Below, one piece after another: positions 127 to 19,424 of a DNA stretch of 64,000 nt. The DNA comes from Dimorphilus gyrociliatus (taxonomy: Eukaryota > Animalia > Annelida): assembly GCA_904063045.1 (NCBI GenBank), contig CAJFCJ010000014.1, positions 434,001 through 498,000 of the forward strand, given 5' to 3'. Under the pieces are notes generated by a model. That model did not search any database, was not told where the DNA came from, and worked only from the letters and a program-made list of their open reading frames with translations. Positions within the stretch are counted from its first letter, which is position 1; each line of letters starts with the position of its first letter. The position numbers and the translations under genes are program-made.

Positions 127-1662
127 ATGATAAAACGTCTATTTTTATTATCAATTATTTATCTAGTAAATAAGAATGCCGTCAAAGGAAGTGAAATCGG
201 TAAGATTAGCCATAATTGTCCTAACAACTGTTTTATTCAAAAGACTTTATTTTATTTTAAGGATACTTCTGGCAATTGACCGATATTCACATGAATTTGT
301 TTTATAATAAATCTTCTACAAATCCTTTGGGTGATTATGTTCAAGGTACTCCTAAAAAACTTGTGCAAACCGTTCTTAAATTCATGAAAAATGAAAAGAA
401 AAAAGCCGATTTCGTAATGTGGACAGGGTAAATATATTATAGTATCTATCGGATATTCATAAAATATTCATTTTGCAATAGAGATAACATTCCACCGTTT
501 TATCCGATGAATAATACGGAAATAGAGACAGAGATTGCAGAGTTGACAAGCATGATAAAAAACACTTTTAACCAAAATGAAGTTCCCATATTTCCTGTCC
601 TTGGTAATCATGATGTCTTCAAAGTAGATCAAATGCCTGCAGATATGAAATTTTACAGAACATTTTTAAATCGTACTCATTGGTCTTCTCTAATAGACAA
701 TGGTAATTGGAAAGCTGGTTTCTACAGTAGAAAATTGAATAAACACCTTAAAATTATAGTTTTAAATACGTGTTTATACTATAATAATGATAAATTAACA
801 ATTATGGACGAAGATCCTGGAGGCCAATTTAAGTGGCTTAGTCAGCAATTACAAACAATTAAAAAGAATAAAATGAAGGTATATCTTGTTTCGTTTACTA
901 TCAGCTCAATTTGTTATTTTCTTTCATCACTTGTTGCTTTTATAGGCTTTGATTACAAGCCATGTACCACCTGGAGACAGATTTCATAGAAAATTCAATG
1001 AGAAATTTCTAACGATTATCTCGAAACATAAAAGAGCTATTTCCGGACTCTTCTTTGGTCATAATCATACTGATACGTTTAGAGTATTCACCGCCGAAGA
1101 GGAAGACATACCAATGTATCTCTCTCCTCCATTAGCTCCTTTCTTGTATAAGAACCCATCCGTGCGCCTATACAAGTACAATAAGAAAACTGGAAAAATT
1201 GACGATATTTTCCAATACTATTTAAATCTTACAGATAAGAATCCAGAGTTTAAATTAGAATATAGTTTCAAAGCAACTTACGGGTTAGAAAATGCTCATG
1301 GTAACAATTTATATAAATTAGCATCTTTGATGTTCAAGAGAAATGGTATTTATTCAAAATTTTGTACATTTTTAAATGTAAGTGCTCCAATATCTTATTG
1401 TCACGATAAGAATATTAAATGGAGTTTGGTGTGCGCTCTGAAAAATTTGAAAGAGGAAAACTTACAACTATGTATTCATAGACATCAGCACAGAAAACCG
1501 GAACATCACGTTCCTAAATATATGTTATACTTGATAATTGTTCTTTCTATTATTGCAGTTTTGTTATTCATTCTTGTTACAATGATTTGTTGTTGCAAAA
1601 AGCGAGTGGTATTCGTTACAAGACCAAGATACGTATTATTATCGTCATCTTCTTTAGGGTGA
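127..1662 (+). CDS. SMPDL3: Acid sphingomyelinase-like phosphodiesterase (SMPDL3-like, calcineurin-like metallophosphoesterase) with C-terminal TM helix; 4 exons
   Basis: Spliced by hand (ATG 127; intron 200-261 and further introns near 430-481 and 879-945). Signal-peptide-like MIKRLFLLSIIYL; metal motifs GYFWQLTDIH, WTGD, GNHD, ITSH, GHNH; hydrophobic YLIIVLSIIAVLLFILVTMI then CCC and a short tail. Confidence 0.9.
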
Positions 1663-2054
1663 GGCTGATTAATTGTACAAAGTATATTGTGTATTTATAT
1701 ACTGCTAAAGTAAAATATTCATTAGCAATTAAGTGCAAGCTATAGAGACTAATGTATCAATATACTGTATATATATATTTGTATGTATAAGGCTTCTCCT
1801 TATGCTTGTTTGATTTTTAACTTGACGATCAAAGTTATAAACATTAGTGTATTATTATTACTCTTTGAATACAAGAAAATTGATATTTAAAGATTTTTAA
1901 ACAATCTTTTTATAGATAAGAATTTATTTTGATAAAACTATTTTTAATTTTGCATCTGCCTATTAACTTTCAATACTTTATCTCATTTATCTTTCTCAGT
2001 AAGGCTTTAGAAGCTTAGATACTATAATTAGAGGATTGACTTTCTTTAAATAAA

Positions 2055-3363
2055 ATGTCTATAAAATTGTATAAAGCTGTTGGAGTGATGTCCGGAACGT
2101 CTTTAGACGGTCTAGATATATGCTACGTTCATTTTTATATAGATGAAGTAAACGAATCATGGAATTTCGAAGTGAAATGTGTAATAAATAATAAATTTGA
2201 ATTTCTAGGTTTCCTAGTAACATGATAATTAAATTGTAAACAGGCTGAAACAGTAGAATATTCTGATGAATGGTATGAAAAGCTATTTAACGCTGGATCA
2301 TTAACTGCTTTAGGATTAGTCAAATTAAATATTGATTATGGACATTTTATAGGAAAGGAAATTGAGAAGTTTGTCTCCAAATATAATCTTCAACCTGATG
2401 TTGCAGGATCGCATGGTAGATTGTATAGTAGTTATTTCTTAAATCGTTTTTATTTCGATATATTTTCAAAGGTCATACGATTTTCCACGAACCGTCTCAT
2501 GGATTAACCTTTCAACTCGGTTGTGGAGAGAGTAGTTCAGCATATCTAAGTTTTCCTTTGGTAACAAATTTCCGTATGAAGGATATTGTTTATGGAGGGC
2601 AAGGTGCACCTTTGGTTCCCAGTGCTGAAAGATTTCTATTTAACAACTACGAAGCTTGCCTAAATCTCGGGGGTATTGCTAACACTCATTTAGAAGATAC
2701 CGCTTTCGATATATGTCCTTGTAATATGCTACTTAATCATATTTGTCAAAGATTAAAACCACCGAGAAAATATGATGAAGACGGTCATATTTCAAAAGGG
2801 GGTAAACTAGTTAAGAGCTATGAAGATGCTTTAGAAAGCTTACAATACTACCAGGTCAGTATTGTACAAAGGTACTGCAAATTTGAAAAGAATCTGCAAA
2901 GACCTTTTAAAATAAAATGCCTTATTTATATTTTTTTGGAAAAAAGGTTTTCCTACAGATAAAGCCTCCAAAGAGTACCGGAAGAGAATGGTTCGAAAAA
3001 AACGTCATTCCCATCATTGAAAGTTGCTTAAAAAGCGGAATATCTCCCCAAGATCTCCTCTACACTTCAACGATGCATATTGTTAAGAGAATAACTTCTG
3101 CTTTTAGTGGTTTTAAAGGTAATTTGTTAATTACTGGTGGCGGAGCTTTTAATAGTTTCCTGATAAGTCTACTATCCGAAAAACTCAACAAAATTGGTAT
3201 CACATTAATTGTGGCTGAAAAAGATATTGTAGAATACAAAGAAGCTCTTATTTTTGCATTCTTTGCTGTTAAAAGATTATTAAATGAACCAAATGTATAT
3301 GGAGAATATACTGGCAGCAATATCAATTCAATCAGCGGAGCTCTACATAGCGGTTCAAATTAA
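2055..3363 (+). CDS. anmK: Anhydro-N-acetylmuramic acid kinase (AnmK family), bacterial-type, with 3 spliceosomal introns
   Basis: Spliced ORF (introns 2181-2243, 2416-2471, 2854-2958) gives AnmK motifs GVMSGTSLDG, GSHGHTIFH, NFRMKDIVYGGQGAPLVP, LNLGGIAN, PPKSTGREWF, ITGGGAFN, KEALIFA. Confidence 0.9.
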
Positions 3364-3818
3364 AGATATTCTATATTTTTATGTTATAATAATGTTTACA
3401 TATCTTTTGTGTGCAATAATGTCTATAAATCGAGCTTATTGATGAAAAAACTACTTTCTTTTCATTTTATTCCTGTATTTGGTCAATATCTTAAATATAC
3501 AAAAACCATCTATTATATTAAAAACAGAAGGAAACTCTAATCTATAAACTTTTGATATTATAATTAAAAGCTGATTAAAAAATAATTTCAGTTGGAAAAG
3601 TTATAAATTTTCACAGAAAAGAATAATTAATTTCGATTAAAAGTAATTCTGAAATTGATATTAAAAATTTTCTCTTTAATAACAGGTAAAATTTGTTTTA
3701 TCAAAGGAAAAGCTAGACTCCATTTTGAAATTCGAAGTAAAATCTCGACAGGGATAAAAAAGAAATTGTCAACAGAAGAAAATTCTTAAATTTATAATAA
3801 ATAGTATATTTACAGAAA

Positions 3819-5022: not shown

Positions 5023-6509
5023 ATGAATCAATATTCAGAACATTATGAAATCAGCGAACTCATTTTCACGCAAACTGTAAGTATTGATTCTTTGTGTAAC
5101 AGTACAGTTTCTTGCTTTTATATGTATGTAGATAATATATATATATATATACATCACTTATTTATTCATATCCCTGGTCGAAAAAGAGATAATATTAACT
5201 GGACGCCAATTTTTTTCGATTTTTTTATATTGTAATATAAATTTATGATAATAACGGAACAAAGTAATCCTATGATTGACTATCACTAATATTTTTTGTG
5301 AACTTTTTCAGTTGTTCTATCTGATTATGTCTTTAACTGTTAATAATAAAAATTGTTGTTCCAGGGCCCTGGCGAGAGGGCCGTCATCCAAATGGACAAA
5401 CTGGGTGACCTTCTCGACTCCAAAGGAGGAATAAAAGATGTCAACTCCACGCTCAGCTTTGTCAACCAAATGAAAGATGCCTGCAAACTACCCTGTCGTT
5501 TCATTTTTCTGTACATCATTGAAGCAACGAGTGAAGATGTTTTATTTGACTTTATGAAAAGCGGCGGCTGGAGCGTCGTTTCACATTGGTTGCAAGATGC
5601 TAAAACTAAAGACAACAAAGCGCTTATAAATTGTTTACTAAACGTTTGTAAAATTCTCCCTGTGTCCGTTGAACAGATGAAGGAGAATAATTGCGCGAAA
5701 TTGATAAAAAGTATTAGTAAAGCAGAAAACAGTGATCTAAAAGCACTGGCCAGGAGCATTGTGGATAAATGGAAAAACGCAGTGAAGAGTGAAGGAAGTA
5801 TGTGTTTTAGACATTTAAAACTTGTTGAGTTTTGTGGGAATTTTTGCAACAACTTTTCCATGTGTTTAATACTTGATTGTAAGAAACGCCAATTTGGGTT
5901 TTCTATTCTCAAAATTACTCTTCTTTTATACAATAAGAGAATGGAAAAGATTGAACTGACAGTATTATCTGTCTTTTTATTAATTAATCAGGATAATATA
6001 ATAATCCTGATGTAGGTTCGTAGATTTTTCAGGCTGAGAAATTTTCGATAGCGGATTTACTTCACGCTTCTTTTCAACCTTGGTCTCAAAAACAATTTTT
6101 TCAATATTTCAGAATAGATCAAAATTTCCAGTTATCGAAAAGAAATTTCATCGAAATAAGTGTCTTAAACAAAAAAAATTGCGGCTTAATGCCATACACA
6201 TGCTCTTACAATAAAAGCATACGTAGTCACATGTAGGGTCGTTAAGAAGAGACACTGCCCAATCGTTGTTAAAATTAGCTTTTTTGCAATGGAAGGCGTT
6301 AGTGGAATTTCAACTAAACGATTGATTGATTAAATCACAAAAAAAATATTTTAAGAGAAAATCTATCCGCAAGATTTGCATGTAATTGTGCTATCTTTTT
6401 ACTCGACAAAAATTAGTAAAGAAAGAGTAAAAATAATCAATAAATATGACAACTGAAAGGCCGATAATCTTGATTCACGAAAGAGACATAATATATATGC
6501 CAATGAATA

Positions 6510-6554
<45 letters not shown>

Positions 6555-9330
6555 TGTATGAATTTATGCCTACATCAGGGTTGGTGTACTATAGATATAC
6601 TGATACACAATACCATTGCTGCCTAAAGAACAAGCCAAGCCAGAATTCTATGTCTGCTGAACAAAAGTAAGAAGTCATTCATCAAAGGTTTATCAATGTA
6701 AAGTGTTTCGTTTGAAATGATTATATTTCATTCGAATTTTATGGGGTTCCTGCACTGTTTAATTCAGCAAGAATATAATTTTCTTGCGCTTTTAATTAAG
6801 GAGAGGAATGGTTTTTAAAACGAATCGCACTTTGCCGAGAGTCTTAAAAACATGGGATAATTGTTGGTAAAAAAAACTTGACACAAAACTCAAATTCAAT
6901 GCTAAATTCAAAATTTTGCTCCTTTTATTAATTTATCTGTTAATTTTCTCTAGGTCAAGTAGATAAGAAGAAAAAGAAACATAAACATCGAAAGAGATCA
7001 ATCGACGAAACAAAATCTGATTCAAAAACTGAAGAATCATCTCCTGTTTCAAAAACAATCAAACTTTCGCCAAAAGAAGGCGAAGTTGAAACAAATAAAA
7101 AAATAAAAACAGTTAAAGAACCAAAATTAAAATTAAGAGCCACAGGTACATGGTCCAATGACTTTCATTTGGTGCTAAGTTTCGTAGATTTACTAGTTAT
7201 AAATACATGGAATAAATATATTTTTCGACGGTTTGGGATAGTCCACATGTGCAATAAAATAAAATACGTTATAAACAATGCGCTATGTTTCGCCTATACT
7301 CATAGATTATAGGCCTACCCGCGTTATTTTGTATTTATACTTGATACTGACTTGGCACCTTTAAAATATCTGATCTATATAATGCCTTTTATTTTGTTTC
7401 AATTGATTAACAAATTAATTAGACAACTAATAAAAGTCTTATGTAGATTTCACAATACAATATATATATATATATATATGATCACATGCTTATATATATA
7501 TTTATATATACACGCATATACCTATCACGCAAATAGATGTATTTGCGTATATACAAATATGTTGTATATATATATTTGCGTGTATGTACATGTGTACAGA
7601 GTGATCTGTATATATATATATATACATATATTCCAAAAAGGAATACCCATTCTTACTTTCTCTTTTGTTCAATAGGTTTAGAACAGGAAACGAATTTACC
7701 GCAAAAGAAAAAGGGATCGAAAGATAATCATGTGGGATTACCGAAAATTTCTACAACCCTTCCTCCATCGAAACGTGCAAGGTAAGCTAGTTGTCTTTTT
7801 CTATTTGCCTTTGAAATAAGGTTTGCACGTACAGCTAAATTAACTATATTTTCAAAACTTTTTAATTGTAGCATGATGGCACGGAGTATTCAACCACCTG
7901 AAAAGAAAGCAAGAAAAGAAACAGGAGATATTCAGCAGGGTAAAATCAAACTGATTACCACACCACCGCCAATGCGTAAGAATTATTGTTTTGCCTTATA
8001 TTATTTAAATGTTTTAATTAATTGTTTCTTCTTTATTTTAGCCGCTCAAGAAAGCTCTCTGTTTATGGATGCAATTATGACGGCATCGTCGAAAAATGCT
8101 CCTAAAAAGAAAAAAGTCAAGAAAACTCAAAAATCAGCTACCTCTCCGTCCAATTCGGCCTCCAGTCCTCCCTACACAACCGAAAGTGGTTCACCCCCCC
8201 CGGTAAATACTTAAAAAACAATAATATTTTCAACTAATACCCATTTATAAACTTCTTTAATGTTGCATTATTATTCTTTTTTCTCTTTGCTATTGTAGGC
8301 TACAGCAGAATCAAGTGATAAAACAGACAAGAATGATAAATCTCCGATTAGAGATAACGATTACGCTCCAAAAGTTAACAGGAAACGAGTAACATGGGCT
8401 GAAGAATCCAACTTAAAAAAGTTCCATTATTTCGAATTGGATGAAACGGAAAGAGTTAATGTGAATAAATTAAAAGACTTCGAAGAAGTAAAACGAGAAG
8501 AAATGATGCGTGAAAAACAGGCCATGTTGGCAAAGAAAGCTGGTTTTGATCTAGATGATGGTCTAACTATTGTTCATTTTTGGAACCCTTTACAATCAAT
8601 CTCCAATGATGACTTACCATCTTTTCCGAAAACCACAAAAAGTAATGAAATTAACGTTCAAAAGGAGAGAGAAGAAAAAGTTTTAGCCGCAATATATTTT
8701 AACAAGTCAGCAATACCTCCGAGTCCTCATGAACCTGACCCTCATCCAGAAACGAAATGTCCTCCTCCAGTTATAATTCCGTTAAATTCCAGTAATGAAA
8801 TGCGGTTTGAACACCAAACCCATAGGTCTTCTGAAAGCGGCATGTTGCAGACAAGTGATGGAAAACTGCAATTACGTCCGGATGTTTCAAACTTATTAGC
8901 TTCAATGGCAAACCAAGTTCAAAACGGTGGTCAAATGCAAGTCGCTAAAGATGCCATACAAAAACTACCATCACATTTACGTTCACTGTTGGAACAACCA
9001 CAAATTCAAGGAGTTGTCGTTCAAACTGTAGGAGACGATCCTAAAAAAATTATGGAATTGCTAAACGACCCTAATAAACTGCAGCAAATAATCGGAAACT
9101 ATCAAATGAGACAAGTCAGGGGAGGCAATAATAGTGGTAATGGTGGTGGTGGAGGAGGTGGAATGGGTGGTATGGGAGGTATGGGAGGTATGCCTAGACA
9201 CAACCATGGTGGAAACGGACAATTCAGAGGACCTCCACGAGTAGTGTGCAAACACTTTAAGCAAGGTAAATGCAAATTCGGACCTAACTGTAATTTTTTG
9301 CATCCAGGCATAAATGGACCAAAGGTTTAG
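5023..9330 (+). CDS. PPP1R10: PP1 nuclear targeting subunit PNUTS (TFIIS-N domain, PP1-docking motif, Gly/Met-rich tail, CCCH zinc finger)
   Basis: N-terminal TFIIS-like domain (FMKSGGWSVVSHWL...CAKLIKSISK). RKRVTWAEESNLKKFHYFELDETERVNVN matches the PNUTS RVxW region. C-terminal CKHFKQGKCKFGPNCNFLH. In-frame splice from a first exon starting at 5023. Confidence 0.92.
6513..6553. repeat. (AT)n microsatellite in PNUTS intron
   Basis: Direct AT dinucleotide run. Confidence 0.95.
7458..7630. repeat. Compound (TA)n/(TG/CA) low-complexity, self-complementary intronic tract
   Basis: Several TA runs interspersed with CACGCA/TGCGT and TACA/TGTA units. Confidence 0.85.
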
Positions 9331-9718
9331 CTTGACACACGTCATTTTTATTTAATTGTTGATTGTACAGTTTTGAACTGATTTGTAGTTGCATGTACTT
9401 ATGGTTTTTGTTAATTGTTTGAATTTTGTTCTGTTTTATATAGGATTTAGAGGTCTTAAACTGAGTAAACTTCAACCAGTTTTATTAAATCCTATTCTCT
9501 CAACGGGCAATTCAATAAATATTTCGCGAAAGAAATTAAAACACGGTGTTGAGGTTAAAGGGTATAAAGATTCGTTAAAGCTACTATACAAAAATAATAC
9601 TAAATACTTTTGAATAAAATTCATAAATTTCCGTAAAATCTCTTTGTAAGGCCAATTTTTTTAAATTACAGTGTTTGATATAGAAAAAATAAATTTACAA
9701 TTCATAAAATACATCTTT

Positions 9719-12088
9719 TCAAGGTGTAAAGCATAAGCTATTGTCTTCCTCTTTACAAATACTTTCATCACGACTTTGCATTCCCGGTGTTTGCATTGTT
9801 ACATGCATAGGCGCTTGTTTCATAGATGCATCCTCAATCTCTTCTAGCCCACCAGATTCAACAAGTAATGCCATCTGTTTTTGAACAGATTTACCATCTT
9901 CCCGAACTTGTGGAAATTCCGTACATTTTTCAGCGTATTTTGCGGCCTCTTTTAGATTTTTATGTTTTAAATAGTAAATGGAGAGATATTTGTAGCTGGC
10001 AGCTAATGAATCTGCAGACGGCTAGACAACGTAAAAGAATTTAAGAGTGAGTATTCATATCCCTTTGGTTAAAAAAAATAACTTACAACTATGAGTTGGT
10101 TATCAGTAAAATTCAAGAATTCAACATGAGCTGCTGCGGCATTGTCTTCTTCACCTAAATTTTCGTAAACTCTGAAAATACAGAACAATTACAGATTTCT
10201 ATTTAATGTATATGTTAAGTATATTAAGTTCTTACACCCTGTACAGTACATATATACATATATTGTATATGGTTTAAGTAGTTTAAAACGTATTAGGTCA
10301 ATGGAATAAAGGCAGAATTTAGAAAAATTTCCCTGGCCTTTTATTCTCTAATTACAGTGGCGATAAATGACTAGTATGAGAGCTATTTTTAAGGCAGCAA
10401 AATGGAGCTTACTTTGCTAGACGAACAATTGCAATTCCTTCTTCATCCCCGACTTGATGAGCTTTCCAATAACATTTCTTTGCTTCTTCTAATCTAAAAG
10501 AGGAGGAAAAGAATTACCAATATTACCAACCATCTTCTTTTTTTTTAATATAAAACTTATCTACCTCTTCAGTGCTTCGTAACAAACTCCTAAACCTATT
10601 ATTGCTCGAAAGTCGTTGGGCCTTAAACTATGCGCTTTCATAAAATAATAGAGTGAATATCTAATGAATAAAACAGTCATTACACTTTTTGCTTCAAATA
10701 AATCAATCTAACGATTACCTATGAAGATGCAACAATTCATAGGCTTGTCCAAGACCATACCAGGCTCTGTAATCATTCCTATTTATATCTAATCCTCTTC
10801 GATAGGCTTGTATTGCCCCAGCGAAATGTTTTAAATTTAAATATTCATGACCAAGTAAAGTACAAGCATCGGCGTAATTTGGATCTAATTTTAAAGTTCG
10901 CTCAAAATATAGGGCAGCTTTTTCATGAGTTCCACGAATAGAATAATAATTTCCAATGGCACAGCAAGTCTGTGGCCGATACTTATCGATTGATGATAAT
11001 TTTTGAGCTAAGACCGCTAATTCTTGTCTTTTTTCCTTGATAAAGAAAAATCAATATAATTTGAACTTTTACATTTAATGAGCTCTTACTTGAACGTAGA
11101 GAACATTCGAATAAATGTCCATATCGTCAATTCTAAAAGGATCTTTTTGAATTAAAGACTTGAATAACTCGCAAGAGCTCTCCATATCTAAAAGTAGATA
11201 AATATATATAAATATGTGAATAAACAGTGACATATAATAACCTCTCATAGTATTGTAAGTTCTACCCATTTGTGCTGCTATATAAGTAGACTCGTTAAAA
11301 CCATTATCTTTTATCTTTGCATATAGTTCAATTGCTTCTGGTCCTAAATTCAACGAGGATAAAACATGAGCTTTAAAGAATGTATACATCCAGTGTTGGG
11401 TTGGTATGGATAAGTTTGTCAACATAAATGAGTCAGTTACGAGTTTAGATAATTCTTCCCATGCATTCCAGAAGGCAGCTTTCAAAGCTATTGCATCGCA
11501 AAATATCTCTACTGCTTCATCAACTAGTTTCAATTTTGTAAGAACTATTCCGTACAACCACAAACAGTAGGCATCCAATGTTTTCTCTCTCCTCTTTGCT
11601 TTTAGTTCTGATCTAAGCTGCTTTAAATGAGAAATGTTTTCTTCACCACTTCCTATATTTAAGATTGGCCTTTGGTCAAGAAGTTTTTTCTCTCCGGATA
11701 AATACCTTGAATATACATCGAGAAAATAAGCAACATCACTTTTACTATCTCTTAATAAATTCGATGCTCTGTCGTATTCTCTCTGATCAAAGTATGACCG
11801 AGCTAGGATGTATTGATCATTTTCTTCGTAACAGTCGTCTTCTAACTCATATCTAGTTCTAGATTTTGCAGCTTGAACGTCTTTGAGAGAGTATATTAAT
11901 TCTGAAGTCCTGAGTGATAAAAGCAACATTTATACACAATAGGTAAAATACTCGTAAAATTGATAAATTATTAATAAGTACCATGAGCAATTATTCGTTA
12001 ACCTCCTTGTGAAGCATTCGTTGTATACATCATATAATTCTCTCTTTATTTCCGATAAATTCCACTTTTGAACAGAAAACTCCGCCAT
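9719..12088 (-). CDS. CDC23: Anaphase-promoting complex subunit 8 (CDC23), TPR protein
   Basis: MAEFSVQKWNLSEIKREL...; YILARSYFDQREYDRAS, AYCLWLYGIVL, FWNAWEEL, DPFRIDDMDIYSNVLYV. Last exon translated to TGA at 9719-9721. Confidence 0.93.
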
Positions 12089-12930
12089 TTTTCAAAGATT
12101 CTAGCAAAATATGTTTCCAATATCGGTGAGCGTTGTCCAAAAGTCGAGGTGAATTCGAAGTTGCCTATACTTATAATATTGATAAACTTTAGATTATTTT
12201 GAGAAATTGCCAATGGCAGCCTAAATGGTATCGTTTCATATTGAAATTTGGCTAAAAAGCGTTTGTGAAAATATTTTTTTTGTCGTAACCCAAATAGAGC
12301 TTAATTTATTCAATGAAAATATTGTATGTAATTAAAATGACTCATGAATATATATTTTTATCAATTTAAATTATTCTGTGTATTTATTAAATTATTCTAT
12401 AAATTATAATTGGGATAATATTTAATATAAAATCGTTCAATATTGATTCTTTAAAAAAGAAAGACTGAAAACAGGGTAATTATTAGTCCCGCATTAAGAC
12501 AAACTATGCTTAATATCATATTGAACATTTTAGTAGAAGTTTTTTCTGAGAGAGCTTAAATATGCTCGGTAAGATTTCATTGGCGTTGGAGTATTTCTAA
12601 AAATACGAAAGCATGCAAATCAACAGAGTTCCGGTACGGAACTAGCGTGACAACCATTTTCATCGAACGTTTTGGTCTAGTGAGTTTTTTTTATGCTAAT
12701 ACACCTTAACTATAAATGTGGATAAACTAAAAATATGACAATTATCTTATTTATACTTTTAATTTTATAATTTGTAATATCGTTTGGGTTTGCAAAGAAT
12801 TTATTATTTAATATGGCGGCTTCAAAATTACTGCAGTATATTATGTAATAACCTCCGTTAATGTAATTGTTACAGCATGTCCAGATTATAGACAGGAGCT
12901 CACTGTTGATTCGTTTATATTTTTGTTAAA

Positions 12931-15900
12931 ATGCTTGAAGTTACTGTGAAAACTTTGGATGGGAAAAACAAAAAATTCTCTGTTCCTGATGAGGTTGTTT
13001 TAGTACTAACTTTCTATACATAGTCTTATATTTCACTCTTCTAATCAGTATACCATTGAGGAATTCAAGAAAAAGATTGCAAGTGGAATAGTATGTTTTC
13101 TATATATACCATTGCATAGGGTACTTTTAATTTGCTGTTAATAGGAAATTGCTCCCGAGAGGCAGCGTCTAATCTTTCAAGGAAAAATTTTACATAATGA
13201 AAAAAGACTACAAGATTTTGGTAAATATATTTTGTTTAATTTTCATAGGAAATATTTAAATTTAAATTTTTTTTAATTAGACATAAATGGGAAAGTCATA
13301 CACGTTGTCCAAAGTCAAGCTCCACCGCCTGAGAGTTCTACCTCCGAAAGTGCAAGCTCGTCCAACAGGCAAGATAGACGAAATAGAAGCCATCCAAATG
13401 GAAATGTTCGCGTATTGGATGCCTCCACTATGCATGAAATGATGCAAAACATCTTTTCAGGAAATGTGGATGGCTCTAGAAATATTTTCAGATCTGTCAG
13501 TTAAAAATCAACAAGATATTTGTAGAATTCTAACTTTTAAATGTTATAGAACGATGGAAATCAAGTTGATGTTCATGTTAACATGAGAGTCGTAGATACT
13601 CCACCAGTGAGAAGCGAAGCTTGGGGCAGGCTGCAAGTTGTTAAAAGAAACTTACGAACTGTAACAGCAGTTGTAGATAGATTAGATGTAAGTTGTTAAA
13701 ATATATAGAATATTCCGTTCTTACGTTATATAATATTATTCCCATTTTAGGACCCAAATATAACGGTAGAAGATCTAGAGCGAGTAGAAGCTCTCACTAT
13801 GGCAGAAGAATTGCAACGAGAGCGTGAAGAAGATGAAGCAGCAAATAGACGGAGAGAAGAAGTATCAGAACCGAGAGAAGAACTGCCAGAGTAAGAAAGC
13901 TATTTATTAAAATTAGATTTCTCTATTTTCACATTGCATAAAAAGGAATCCCCCATTGTCGGAGGTAGCCGACGTTCTCGATGCGATGCTGGCTGCTCAG
14001 TTTCGATTAAGACCTCATGTAGAACGATATAGAGATCTCCTTAGGTCTGACATGGCATATGAAAACCCCGACGAAGCCAGGAGAGTACAAGCGCTCACCA
14101 ACCTCGTCAATGAGTCTCTTCACGGATTAAGCCATGCCTTGCACTCTCTAACCGACCTTATGGTGAACGTTGATTCAGCACCTCCACGAGTAGCTCGTGC
14201 AACAGCACAACCAGTTCAACCAGTTGCTGCAACAGTTATTCAACAAACTATACCGGTATCAGCTAGCATAAATCTTGTTGCAGGAAGGCAAACATCAACT
14301 ACGGTAAACTAATTATTTTTTCTCATATATCATTTTCACTTATGTATGTCAATAAATAGACTCCGACAACTCAAACACCGGTTACATCTAGTTCATCAGA
14401 GGGGCAGACGCCTACCCCTACCACAGCAACCAGCTCCACTACTCGTAATCAACCCTTTGTTACTTACTCCGTTGGTCAACCTACTTTTGCTGTTGGTAGT
14501 ATGTCATCTCCACCCACAGGGACTTCGGGTTTGTTTTCTGATATTAGTTTTTTTAATTACCATATTAAAAAAACTTTTTAATTAGGTACAAGCAGTACTG
14601 CCGGAACAGCAACCAGTAACCCTTCCCCTCAATTACCTGCATTCTTTCAAAATATACTTCGTGGAGTTGGCATACCAAGAGGCCAAGGTAGAAATTTAAA
14701 TTAATTATTTTAGGATTTTAAATTTTATAAATTAATTCCTTCAGCAGGAACCAGACAAGCAACATCGAGAATACCACAAGCACCACCTACTCGCAGTGCT
14801 GGAACTTCGGGAACAACCGCTCCCAATGTTAGCAATGCTCCAGAAGACGCCAACTCAAATCTTCAAACTGGTCTGCAAAGAGCCAGCAGATTAGTAGATC
14901 GATATTTACCGTGCTATTCAAGATTTTTCCGATTAGCACAAGTTCGAGCCAGTGCTGAGCAGGTTTGACATTCAAATATTGAGTCAATATCTAACTAAAT
15001 TTTCTTTAGAATGAAGCCAGCGCCCAAAGTACGACAGAAGATGATATTTTTAGTCAAATAATTCAAGGAGTAGCAGGAAGTGGTGGGTTGCGCGGGGGTA
15101 ATATTCGTCTTGCATCTCGCGGAACAAATACTCGTGGAGAAACTACAAATAACGCTGGAACAACAACTGGACAAAGTAGGCCAAACCCAACAGGAGGAAC
15201 ATCGTCAACTGCCAACGAAGTATATTTTCTTTCCTTGAATCTAAAAGTTTTTTCGCTACAATTTATAAATTTTTAATTAGGTGAGAAGTGGTTCGTCATC
15301 TTCCAGTACAGCGCAAATGCTGTCTCAGATAACCCAAATTATGCATGAACAGCTGAATTCCTCCCGTCAGGAAATGACGCCGATAGCCCAACTTTTGAGC
15401 GTAGTTGGACAAGATACTTTTGAAAGTAGAGGTGAAAACACTTTTGTTGACATGTTTAACATTTTGCTTCAAAACCTGGGCCTTGTGGATTTGGTTGGGT
15501 TGGTTCAAGGCCAACATGAGTGTTTGAACCGTGTTCGATCACACTGGAGGGTAAAATTTTTGCTTTTAAAAGTCTTGCTTGTATTAAAGTATAAGTTTGA
15601 ATTCATATTTGTAGGTATATGCTCAAGAGCAGATATTACAGAATGAGCCACCAACTGAGGCTAATATGACAAACGCCATAAATCGTATTTTGAATGAATT
15701 ATCTGAAATAACTCACTCAATTGATACAGTTTGTGTTATATATTTGTATCCTTTTTCAGTAATAGAAATTTTTTGCAGACTGAGGTCCATATTCGAGATG
15801 AAATTGATTTTCCGGCCTCTCTACGAGGGTTGACTAGACATCATTTGGAAGAGATGCTTAAAATTATTTTAAGTGACGCAGAAAATGAAAATCCCAGTTA

Positions 15901-16910
15901 CGGAAATATCGTAGGAAATGCTTTTACTGCTTACGCTCGGCGCCTTATGACAATATGTCGTCATTCTTCAGCCGATGATGCCAGTTTCCATAATTTAATA
16001 CGCCAACAGGTCAATATAATTGGACAAAATGTTTCAATAATTTAAATAAAGTTTAACTTAATAAAATAGGTTACATCAATTTTTGCTTCCGGAGTGGACG
16101 CTTCAATGCGAGATATGATGTCAACTATGGCCACAATGCAAATTAATCAGATTATGGCCAATTCTACTGTTCCAGAAGAAGAAATTAGGCAATTTGTAGT
16201 AACTAAAACAGACACAGATGAATATATGAGTTGTGGAGAAGAAGAAGTACAACCAACTGCTAGTTCGTCAAATGTTAGCTGAAATCTTCGTAGAATATTT
16301 CCCCAAATTCATACTAATTGATGTTTGTTTACAGGCAATAAACGATAAAATGGACACGGAGCAATCAACCACAAGGCAACCTCAAACTTTAGCTCCAATG
16401 CCTAGCCCGCCACCACCACCACCACCACCACCACCTCCTCAGTCCTCTAACGAAGAACACATTAATATCGCTTATGGCTCAGAAGAATGGCATTCTCTTG
16501 TCGACCGTGAATGGGTCGATGTTATTCATCGAGATACTATAAGGCAAGAGTGTCAGTCACATGCTACATCGAATCATTTGAGTGACGCATATATATCCAC
16601 TATGCCGTCAAAAAGGAGAAAAATAGTTGAAAAACATAAGGAGGACATGAGAAAACGATTGTGTAATGGTCAGAGTCACGTGCGATTATTAACGAATACG
16701 CTAGAAACTACTATTGAAGAGTCAACTCGACGTCCAATAACATCTATTCAGTCTCTGATGAATGATATCTGCGAAGATGGTAGTTTAGTTGAAGCCTTCG
16801 AAGAAGATATAAAAGAACGATTAAATGATCGATTGGAAAAAGATACGGATTTCGATGGTAGCAGTTTTCCAAATTCTGAAAAATGCTTTCGTTCCAAAAA
16901 TAGTAACTGA
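12931..16910 (+). CDS. BAG6: BAG6/Scythe (UBL domain, Pro-rich regions, C-terminal BAG-similar domain); divergently transcribed from CDC23
   Basis: MLEVTVKTLDG...EIAPERQRLIFQGKIL UBL domain; EEWHSLVDREWVDVIHRD and LSDAYISTMPSKRRK; C-terminal RLNDRLEKDTDFDGSSFPN. Confidence 0.93.
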
Positions 16911-17007
16911 ACTTTTTAATTGTTTACGTATATTTGTCTTTAAAAGTTACTAAATATCAACTCTAAAATGACATAAAAAAAGTATATATGTACAAACTGA
17001 ACAATAT

Positions 17008-17928
17008 TTATATTTGGCTATCTTCTCGATAACCCAGAGTTGGATAGCCACTATAGCTAGGATGTTGACCCTGATAGTCTCCTTGATAATCCCCATTGTA
17101 GCCATCCTGGTTTTTTTCATTATAGCCGCCTCCTCCTTCGTACTGTTCTGCGTATCTAGGGTTGTAATCGGTTCTCTGCTGCCAGTTAGGTGCGGCTGGT
17201 TCAGCAACTTCTGGGAAATCAACCTGTCTTTCTTTAACAGGAGGTTCATAATAAAAGACAAGACCAAAACAAATTGTATTAATAAAAGTTGCTATTAGAG
17301 CCAGAACGAACGATGCTCCGATTTTGTATTCTAAAATTGATCCATCCTCCTTTTTAGCTGTGAAAACAGCTACGCCGATCAGAGTGAAAACAGCTGTGAT
17401 TGAAATAAGCAAGAAAAACCGGTTTACTTAGTGATAATTTTTTTCTTTTAATTTCTCATCTTACCAGCAGCACCTGTTCCAACTGCTAATATCAGCTTTT
17501 TAAGAAACGAGTTTTGGAAGTTAATTACTAAGAAGACAATGATTATAACCTCTGATGCTAAAGAACAAACCGCTCCAAGAATAATAAATACTCTAGTTGC
17601 CTGCACGTAGTCTATCATAGAGAAAGAGTTTTCATTGTAAATCATTAAATACTACAATAAACAAACCTTCCGCCCATTCTCCAGCTTTAAAGCATCTTTC
17701 CCCAAGACATCCTGCCCATAATCCTGTGTGTTGCCATCTTCCTTCGCTTTTTGGTTTACAAATTGTTCACTTATCATCACATCAACCTGAACAAAACAAT
17801 ACTTACTAGTAATCCTTAGTCCACCTAGGTAAGCCAATGCTGATACCAAGGAATATAACAGATATTGGCAACAACCAAACTATTACTATAAACCCTTGGA
17901 CATCATTAAATCTTCTTAAAACAGACAT
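17008..17928 (-). CDS. Claudin/PMP22/EMP-superfamily tetraspan membrane protein
   Basis: Splicing across intron 17747-17806 yields PRW...GLWAGCLGERC (W-GLW-C-C signature). Four hydrophobic segments, a Tyr/Gln/Gly-rich tail and a terminal DSQI (PDZ-ligand-like). Confidence 0.8.
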
Positions 17929-18203
17929 AGCTTTTTAAAAATGAGTTTTGTCTTAAATAATTATCCTGTTATCAGGTTTGATTCACCTTTAACAGGTAAA
18001 TCGATAGAGGTCGCCACATAAGAAAGGAATTTCCGGTGGCGCAAAATATCTAAGTATGAATGAATGAACAGCACGGCTGTAGTATAATAATTCGAATTAA
18101 TATGTTTTTATAAATCCCAAACAATAAGTAAGTTTTTTAAAATATCAAAGGTCAATTATTAATATTTATTAAAAATAATATCAATATTTATGGAAATCTT
18201 TAA

Positions 18204-19424
18204 TTAAGCTGGCAGTAATGTTGAATTAAGCACTTTAGATCTTTCATATTCAGCTTCAGTTTTTATAATACCCTTCACTGCGACAATTTGATATTGTTCT
18301 TTAAAGAACGTTTTTAAACTTCTCCTAAATAGTTTCCACGTAATACTTTCATTACATTCACCACGACAATAACGTCCACATAACTCTTTCGAACAGCTGG
18401 GATCGAAAATAAGAAGATTGAGACCATTCTGACCATGTTCAATGCCTACAATCGTTCTCGAATGTCCTTGATGTTGCAAATACAGCGGAAATTTTGCATC
18501 GGGGCTGTTAAAGTAATTTTGTACCCAATCAAATATATGAGAATGGGTACCAGTCGTTTTACTCTTACAGTGAACATCTATAAGCGTGCATTGTATTCGG
18601 AAAGATGACAGTAGAGCCACAACTTCAGTTGCTCCTATCCATTTTTTAGTATTAACCAACTTATGAGAAAGTTGTTGAGCTCCTCTTGTATCAAATCCTA
18701 AACTCCAAGCTCTTTCGATAAGAGTTTGAATTTTTCGAATTGGTGTTAACTCTTGAAGAAATTGATTAGAAAAAATTTCGCAGTTTGAAAATTCTCTCGA
18801 ATTCATCATTGATGAAAGCAACATTTGTAAATTTCTATAACCGCATGACCAACCTCTATCGAATGGTCCATTTGTGAAGAGGTAGCAGGATGAACAAAGT
18901 TTAAAATCAGATTTTATAGCTGTTAAATATTCTCTTAAAATGTTCAAAATATTTGAATAAATCTTTCCAGACTCTTTGTCAAAAAGTGTACTTTGGCTTT
19001 GACCGGAGGATGTCGAAGCGACCTCCTGCGAATGACTTGTCGAAGGTTGTTTAGAGTTTTTTTTAAATTCTACATGAGCTACTCCGACGCCTCTATCCCT
19101 GTCGTCGGGTTCTTTATATATCTCTATTGAACTCTCTGATTCGGTTTCATCGAAATGATTATTTACATGACTGTCTAAATCCTCGTGATTCCTTAAGTTT
19201 TTATTGCATATTGGGCAGTATTTACCAGCTCCAGCTTGATCATTTTCAAAATGAGCGTTAGTATGAAACTCTAGATCTTTTTTATTCATAAAACTTAACC
19301 CGCAAACTATACAAACTCTTGCAGCATTTTCATCATGAACTTTTGAAAAATGTTCATCAAGCTCGAAAGCAGAATTCGCACGAAAATCGCACATTGGACA
19401 GTCAAAAACGGCTTTCTCGGCCAT
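18204..19424 (-). CDS. ZUP1: Zinc finger-containing ubiquitin peptidase 1 (peptidase C78), intronless CDS
   Basis: Three C2H2/UBZ-like fingers followed by GWSCGYRNLQMLLSS, WIGATEV, QHQGHSRT and IFDPS (Cys-His-Asp triad). Confidence 0.92.
   Translation of the reverse strand: MAEKAVFDCPMCDFRANSAFELDEHFSKVHDENAARVCIVCGLSFMNKKDLEFHTNAHFENDQAGAGKYCPICNKNLRNHEDLDSHVNNHFDETESESSIEIYKEPDDRDRGVGVAHVEFKKNSKQPSTSHSQEVASTSSGQSQSTLFDKESGKIYSNILNILREYLTAIKSDFKLCSSCYLFTNGPFDRGWSCGYRNLQMLLSSMMNSREFSNCEIFSNQFLQELTPIRKIQTLIERAWSLGFDTRGAQQLSHKLVNTKKWIGATEVVALLSSFRIQCTLIDVHCKSKTTGTHSHIFDWVQNYFNSPDAKFPLYLQHQGHSRTIVGIEHGQNGLNLLIFDPSCSKELCGRYCRGECNESITWKLFRRSLKTFFKEQYQIVAVKGIIKTEAEYERSKVLNSTLLPA

Follow-up and report, generated by a model that had tools for sequence, protein, structure and literature searches.

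The window, a stretch of 64,000 nucleotides from the annelid Dimorphilus gyrociliatus, contains a gene for AnmK, a sugar kinase that acts only on a breakdown product of peptidoglycan yet persists in animals that have none. In the reading that we favor with reasonably good confidence, the gene encodes a working host enzyme that phosphorylates 1,6-anhydro-MurNAc, and goes back to a Bacteroidota-type anmK that entered the ancestor of annelids and molluscs and was vertically inherited afterwards; its substrate, partner and role are what we infer. The gene nests among bacterial homologs, occurs in a restricted set of hosts, and has the structure, flanking genes and expression of a host gene, and is thus a horizontally acquired and domesticated gene. 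Our literature search found no earlier description of the annelid-mollusc clade of AnmK proteins; transfer of anmK into ticks and rotifers has been reported in a 2026 preprint.

The gene occupies positions 2055 to 3363 of the window on the forward strand, where an ATG at 2055 opens four coding exons that end in a TAA stop and encode 361 residues (Table 1). Its completeness and its three GT-AG introns had been claimed in a first-pass annotation, as had the N-terminal peptide quoted there, and all three are borne out. The introns are spliced out exactly as predicted in transcript contigs from two studies (run X2 of study P1 and run X4 of study P2), and the longest spliced contig on the locus covers 2010 to 3457. 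The runs are listed as 'DNA?', yet the contigs are spliced and therefore derive from RNA. Two acceptors, separated by 12 nt, are used for intron 3, so that exon 4 begins at 2947 in the X2 contig and at 2959 in the X4 contig; the additional 12 nt are in frame and add VFLQ immediately upstream of PPKSTGREW. The exons were searched and aligned one by one.

Table 1. Features of the AnmK gene of D. gyrociliatus and of its neighbors, in coordinates of the window (Pa, Pseudomonas aeruginosa AnmK; L001, contig of a related worm).
Feature	Position	Strand	Remarks
Acid-sphingomyelinase-like phosphodiesterase, last exons	507..1662	+	Upstream neighbor; PF19272 ASMase_C, E 3.6e-17; also the neighbor in L001
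AnmK, 5' untranslated part	2010..2054	+	At least this much; the transcript contig of run X4 begins at 2010
AnmK, exon 1 coding	2055..2180	+	aa 1-42; MSGTSLDGLD phosphate-binding motif, equivalents of Pa AnmK S12 and D14
AnmK, intron 1	2181..2243	+	63 nt, GT..AG, phase 0; spliced out in X2 and X4 contigs; same site in L001 ortholog
AnmK, exon 2	2244..2415	+	aa 43-99 and first base of codon 100; profile match, contigs
AnmK, intron 2	2416..2471	+	56 nt, GT..AG, phase 1; spliced out in contigs; same site in L001
AnmK, exon 3	2472..2854	+	aa 100-227; T102, R134, GGQGAPLVP, N170 and catalytic D179 (Pa T97, R129, N168 and D182)
AnmK, intron 3	2855..2958	+	104 nt, GT..AG, phase 0; alternative acceptor gives exon 4 start at 2947
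AnmK, exon 4 coding	2959..3363	+	aa 228-361 and TAA; PPKSTGREW, TGGGAFN, E322 (Pa E326)
AnmK, 3' untranslated part	3364..3472	+	Contig ends at 3429-3472
TFIIS/Med26 domain and CCCH zinc finger gene (PNUTS-like)	5353..9330	+	Downstream neighbor; same order in L001
ANAPC8/CDC23 exon	11075..11929	-	PF04049, E 8.8e-35; same order in L001

An ortholog from a second, clearly diverged worm gives the gene a comparative setting. A search of a large protein library had as its top match P0001, an ORF fragment (83% identical) on a 60.7-kb contig from another sample, L001 (samples SRR23372228 and others). At least four genes (ASMase-like, AnmK, PNUTS-like and ANAPC8) lie in identical order and orientation in positions 7000 to 19400 of that contig and 500 to 12000 of the window. 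The L001 gene has all three introns at the sites found in D. gyrociliatus and is approximately 77% identical at the amino acid level; the upstream AG and the open frame of the intron 3 acceptor are found there as well. Between the two worms pN is 0.13 and pS is 0.79, with silent sites saturated, and strong purifying selection acts on all of the exons. The conserved neighbors and introns, the saturated pS and the low pN therefore indicate a gene that is old, under purifying selection and no contaminant.

The wider distribution was mapped by protein word searches with the Capitella and Mytilus sequences. More than 25 mollusc species, bivalves as well as gastropods, have annotated AnmK-like proteins, as do Capitella, Owenia and Lamellibrachia among the annelids; our literature search found no papers on AnmK in annelids or molluscs, and the database names are automatic. 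Following the annelid and mollusc matches in these searches were proteins from Bacteroidota MAGs, Adhaeribacter, Limibacter, Sediminicola and an Opitutales MAG. The full-length product of the D. gyrociliatus gene itself was not among the hits of either protein search. The nearest subfamily, NCBIfam NF007144, is carried by Bacteroidota and some Verrucomicrobiota, and the Bacteroidetes-type resemblance that had been noticed by eye at the N-terminus is supported both by this family model and by the protein searches. In full-length trees the annelid and mollusc proteins come together as a single clade, with support 98 in FastTree (340 rows) and SH-aLRT 98 in a PMSF tree of 79 rows with E. coli AnmK as the root. 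Its inner mollusc groups follow taxonomy, and the clade as a whole nests inside the Bacteroidota-type bacterial AnmKs. A bacterial-genome scan with the Patella protein returned a single locus (a Kaistella MAG, 43%), and the named donors were not refined by it. Two proteins with an N-terminal insertion of the length found in the animal clade, P0182 and P0204, were suspected of being eukaryotic, a suspicion that was dropped, since their contigs are plainly bacterial.

Gene structure bears on the date of the acquisition. A phase-0 intron, two to five residues past a conserved (V/I)(L/I)P(L/I/V) motif, was found in all five of the genes whose exons were mapped exactly (Capitella, Owenia, Lamellibrachia, Mytilus and Patella). 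Since the gene is of intron-free bacterial origin, a shared intron points to one acquisition before the split of annelids and molluscs. The same intron is present in an annelid-like AnmK gene on a contig of JGI metagenome 3300039238 (L016:1-1863). It is absent from the AnmK genes of D. gyrociliatus and L001, none of whose three introns matches it. The simplest account would be that the long dinophilid branch saw the loss of the shared intron, which was old, and the gain of three short ones, which would make this gene a clean case of intron turnover, with one intron lost, three gained and a known intron-free starting state.

The environmental gene on L016 has a Lamellibrachia-like C-terminal tail (YRFH), and a gene caller took its first exon as a bacterial ORF (P0002). 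In two bacterial MAGs near the animal clade (L014:2946-7188 and L015:1438-9125), anmK adjoins genes for two GHL10-family hydrolases, a GNAT-like protein and a GDSL lipase, an arrangement that may represent a conserved cluster for the salvage of cell-wall material or glycans.

The worm's gene is strongly diverged: its identity averages 43% with the animal clade and 40% with the bacterial rows. When the four exons were placed singly and without constraint in the 340-row FastTree, each fell in a different place, with weak support. A joint placement was therefore made in which the four exon translations of D. gyrociliatus and of L001 were entered as eight separate rows and held as one clade, which was attached to each of the 156 branches of a fixed 79-taxon backbone for comparison of the likelihoods. 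Under LG+F+G4, the best position was the stem of the annelid-mollusc clade, with a likelihood weight of 0.988. The position one node deeper was 4.5 log units worse and was not rejected (AU p 0.52), the stem of the neighboring bacterial group was rejected (AU p 0.02), and places within the annelids were 12 to 16 log units worse and not rejected by AU. Under the site-heterogeneous PMSF model, the stem received a weight of 0.93 and all positions on or inside the clade a summed weight of 0.994, while one node deeper was again not rejected (AU p 0.23). A second backbone, for which the exon rows had been left out of the inference, gave the stem 0.966 and the position sister to Capitella 0.033; the summed weight on or inside the clade was 1.000 and the best place outside it was 8.5 units worse. 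The worm AnmK thus belongs with the annelid-mollusc clade, on its stem or inside it, with a likelihood weight of 0.99 or more on two backbones, and the AU test leaves the position one node deeper unrejected.

These placements bear directly on the rival account of the origin, in which a dinophilid ancestor took anmK, later and independently, from a bacterium near the donor of the clade, the ancestral lophotrochozoan copy having been lost or never present. We judge such a second transfer to be rather improbable. The missing shared intron and the three unmatched ones would follow from it naturally, as would a point placement at the base of the clade rather than among the annelids, but the weight outside the clade amounts to at most 0.6% under PMSF and to approximately zero on the second backbone. 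Moreover, placements within the annelids improve sharply under the site-heterogeneous model, the difference in log likelihood for the position sister to Capitella shrinking from 15.8 under LG to 3.4, as one would expect if a long branch had been drawn basally. Raw identity speaks for the second transfer, the best bacterial rows (45%) nearly equalling the best animal rows (47%), and so does the AU result for the deeper node. Two further features tie the worm to the animals: it has the two-residue N-terminal insertion typical of the annelid-mollusc clade, a length found in only 2 of the 53 bacterial rows, and, after the related worm, the best matches of exon 3 are the environmental annelid-like gene and Mytilus. 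The next-best full-length matches of this exon (Mytilus at 52%, Capitella at 50%) are level with the top bacterial proteins. Finally, because its composition is fully host-like and silent sites are saturated between the two worms, the gene would be old even if it had been transferred independently. Vertical inheritance from the ancestor of annelids and molluscs therefore remains our preferred origin, and the gene is so an old lophotrochozoan gene of bacterial origin. The earlier suggestion of bacterial origin stands; the implied one of a private or recent, lineage-specific transfer is not supported, the gene having been found to group with a vertically inherited mollusc-annelid AnmK clade that is marked by a shared intron, which is largely the outcome named beforehand as refuting it.

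The annelid and mollusc proteins with which the joint placement groups the worm's include those of Mytilus galloprovincialis (VDI32547.1), Capitella teleta (ELU08950.1), Owenia fusiformis and Lamellibrachia satsuma. They have the same N-terminal insertion and key residues as the worm's protein and likewise lack a targeting extension; they differ from it in that the worm's protein sits on a long branch, its gene has the three other introns in place of the shared one, and the C-terminal tail of several of the mollusc and annelid proteins is missing.

The transfers already described provide a second comparison. A preprint of March 2026 reports the transfer of anmK into ticks (IrAnmK), with a note on rotifers, from 'clade 2' of the Chitinophagaceae; it states no earlier eukaryotic case and leaves annelids and molluscs unmentioned (bioRxiv 10.64898/2026.03.13.711553). 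AnmK has also been listed in the literature among the transferred or digestive genes of ciliates and Naegleria. Like the worm gene, those of ticks and rotifers derive from a bacterial anmK that became fixed in an animal genome and that has introns and is expressed. In ticks there is a single intron, in the 5' UTR, and a Cys for Asn168, whereas the worm has three coding introns and has kept the Asn. Neither query, Capitella or Mytilus, had a tick, rotifer or named Chitinophagaceae protein within its best 120 hits, and for this reason the annelid-mollusc acquisition was probably an event separate from the tick and rotifer transfers. Taken together, the data suggest an acquisition much older than that of the ticks, which purifying selection has kept in place in both annelids and molluscs, and such long persistence is a sign that bacterial cell-wall sugar has an enduring use for these animals.

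Assignment of the gene to the AnmK family was based on profile matches of the separate exons. The Pfam AnmK family, PF03702, matches exon 3 (80.3 bits, E 1.9e-22) and exon 4 (48.4 bits, E 9.6e-13) above its cut-off of 24, and exon 1 below it (20.3 bits, E 3e-4); the exons cover positions 3-27, 97-230 and 234-365 of the 367 in the profile. NF007144 is by far the best family model and is tiled by the four exons with neither gap nor overlap (2-39, 41-98, 100-228 and 230-356 of 358). The exons, each scored apart, contribute 40.8, 39.5, 141.5 and 106.7 bits, and this sum of separate scores, 328.5 bits, does not reach the equivalog cut-off of 436 bits, which applies to a whole protein; the D. gyrociliatus gene has diverged too far to carry the equivalog name. 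The solved structures that the exons match are AnmK from Pseudomonas and from Shewanella, together with levoglucosan kinase from a fungus.

Residues of the active site were mapped by alignments to the P. aeruginosa chains (3QBW/8BRE) and by the multiple alignment, with the list of residues critical for the P. aeruginosa enzyme taken from the tick study (bioRxiv 10.64898/2026.03.13.711553). The claim that all catalytic motifs are present held up at this level. Retained in both worms are the equivalents of S12 and D14 (S16 and D18), the N-acetyl- and lactyl-binding residues T97, R129 and N168 of the sugar site (T102, R134 and N170), and the ATP/Mg site with E326 (E322) and the GGG loop (G287-289). 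The catalytic D182, which activates water at C1, aligns with D179 in the motif FDICPCN. Pa D191 is replaced by Asn in the worm; since all 25 annelid-mollusc rows and 52 of the 53 rows of related bacteria likewise have Asn, it is the normal state of the subfamily. Arg134 was considered as a sign of preference for anhMurNAc over levoglucosan and was dropped, as levoglucosan kinase has the same Arg. No signal or transit extension precedes the first strand of the kinase fold at the N-terminus, and on this ground the enzyme is probably cytosolic.

The bacterial enzyme (EC 2.7.1.170), a member of PF03702 with an ASKHA fold and solved structures from P. aeruginosa (3QBW/8CPB) and Shewanella (3CQY), is like that of the worm in its length, in its domain, which the four exons tile, and in its residues for ATP binding, catalysis and sugar binding. 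The two are unlike in that the worm gene is nuclear with introns, has 40 to 45% identity to the nearest bacterial proteins and scores below the cut-off, and in that the worm has no peptidoglycan of its own to recycle.

By analogy with the solved bacterial AnmKs, the worm enzyme would use its N-terminal SGTSLDG loop and its GGG loop to bind ATP-Mg. Asp179 would open the 1,6-anhydro ring with water and the gamma-phosphate would be transferred to O6, converting 1,6-anhydro-MurNAc to MurNAc-6-phosphate. In peptidoglycan the 1,6-anhydro sugar is carried by the ends of glycan chains and by turnover fragments. Animals make no peptidoglycan, and hence the substrate would have to come from the cell walls of bacteria that are eaten or that live on the animal and shed it. 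Judged by this analogy, the enzyme most likely works in the cytosol and phosphorylates 1,6-anhydro-MurNAc that stems from bacteria eaten by the animal or resident on it.

A possible next step is provided by GKRP. A recent preprint shows that the GKRPs of non-mammalian animals, which are homologous to bacterial MurQ, have MurNAc-6-P etherase activity, although no source of their substrate is known (bioRxiv 10.64898/2026.05.08.723886). We infer that AnmK may supply MurNAc-6-P to such an etherase, which could split it to GlcNAc-6-P and D-lactate. AnmK is in this respect a concrete candidate for the source of MurNAc-6-P in invertebrates, and the puzzle has become testable. Tentatively, and with some doubt, we extend the proposal to a complete animal pathway for cell-wall sugar, from AnmK to the GKRP etherase, of which the anmK taken up before the annelid-mollusc split would be the missing first step. 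If this were true, it would explain why invertebrate GKRPs stay active etherases, and lophotrochozoans could feed on anhydro-muropeptides or switch off the signals that these carry, for instance tracheal cytotoxin.

The gene might instead have been kept but repurposed, either for another 1,6-anhydro sugar (levoglucosan-like or anhydro-GlcNAc) or for the binding or sensing of muropeptides, an outcome to which we give only a small chance. The case for it comes in part from the ticks, whose AnmK phosphorylates anhMurNAc approximately 500-fold more slowly than that of E. coli, leading the authors to suspect a shifted specificity (bioRxiv 10.64898/2026.03.13.711553); the worm, however, keeps all of the residues named as critical for ATP and anhMurNAc, including the N168 that is Cys in ticks. 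The fungal levoglucosan kinase of Lipomyces starkeyi (LGK; 4YH5/4ZXZ) is a eukaryotic member of the same Pfam family, and its kinase reaction likewise opens the ring of a 1,6-anhydro sugar. Against its chains, exons 1 and 4 score slightly higher than against the proteobacterial AnmK chains, whereas exon 3 scores 45.8 bits against AnmK chains and 33.4 bits against levoglucosan kinase; LGK, moreover, is a protein of 447 aa with insertions, while the worm gene groups with the Bacteroidota-type AnmKs and its best family model is the bacterial AnmK equivalog. A few members of the animal clade have altered residues in the sugar site, R129 being replaced by V in Aplysia and by G in the second Mytilus copy, but in the worms strong purifying selection extends over every exon. 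Phosphorylation of 1,6-anhydro-MurNAc accordingly remains the function that we prefer.

Variation within the molluscs was also observed. Some bivalves have two AnmK-like paralogs (P0003 and P0294 in Mytilus, P0298 and P0300 in Saccostrea). In the second Mytilus copy, whose lactyl-binding Arg has become Gly, the phosphate loop is degenerate as well (GCTTGPSLDG). Thr97 is replaced by Ser in three heterodont bivalves. Going by such substitutions, some of the bivalve and gastropod copies, that of Aplysia with its Val among them, may have changed function.

The surroundings of the gene are those of an animal genome. The window is compact and AT-rich with short introns, in agreement with the published description of the D. 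gyrociliatus genome (PMC7854359), and the AnmK gene has a GC content of 0.35 and a GC3 of 0.25, similar to the neighboring genes. The flanking genes had been described as ordinary animal genes that speak against contamination, and domain matches support this with an ASMase-like, a PNUTS-like and an ANAPC8 gene. Bacterial contamination or an assembly artefact, for which one could cite only that the protein family is otherwise bacterial, is excluded for practical purposes by three spliceosomal introns removed in transcripts from two studies, by animal genes on both sides on one contig, an arrangement repeated in the second species, and by a host-like base composition. The C-terminus of the upstream ASMase-like protein (positions 949 to 1662 of the window) consists of a hydrophobic stretch followed by CCCKKR, which suggests that this neighbor is anchored in the membrane at its C-terminal end.
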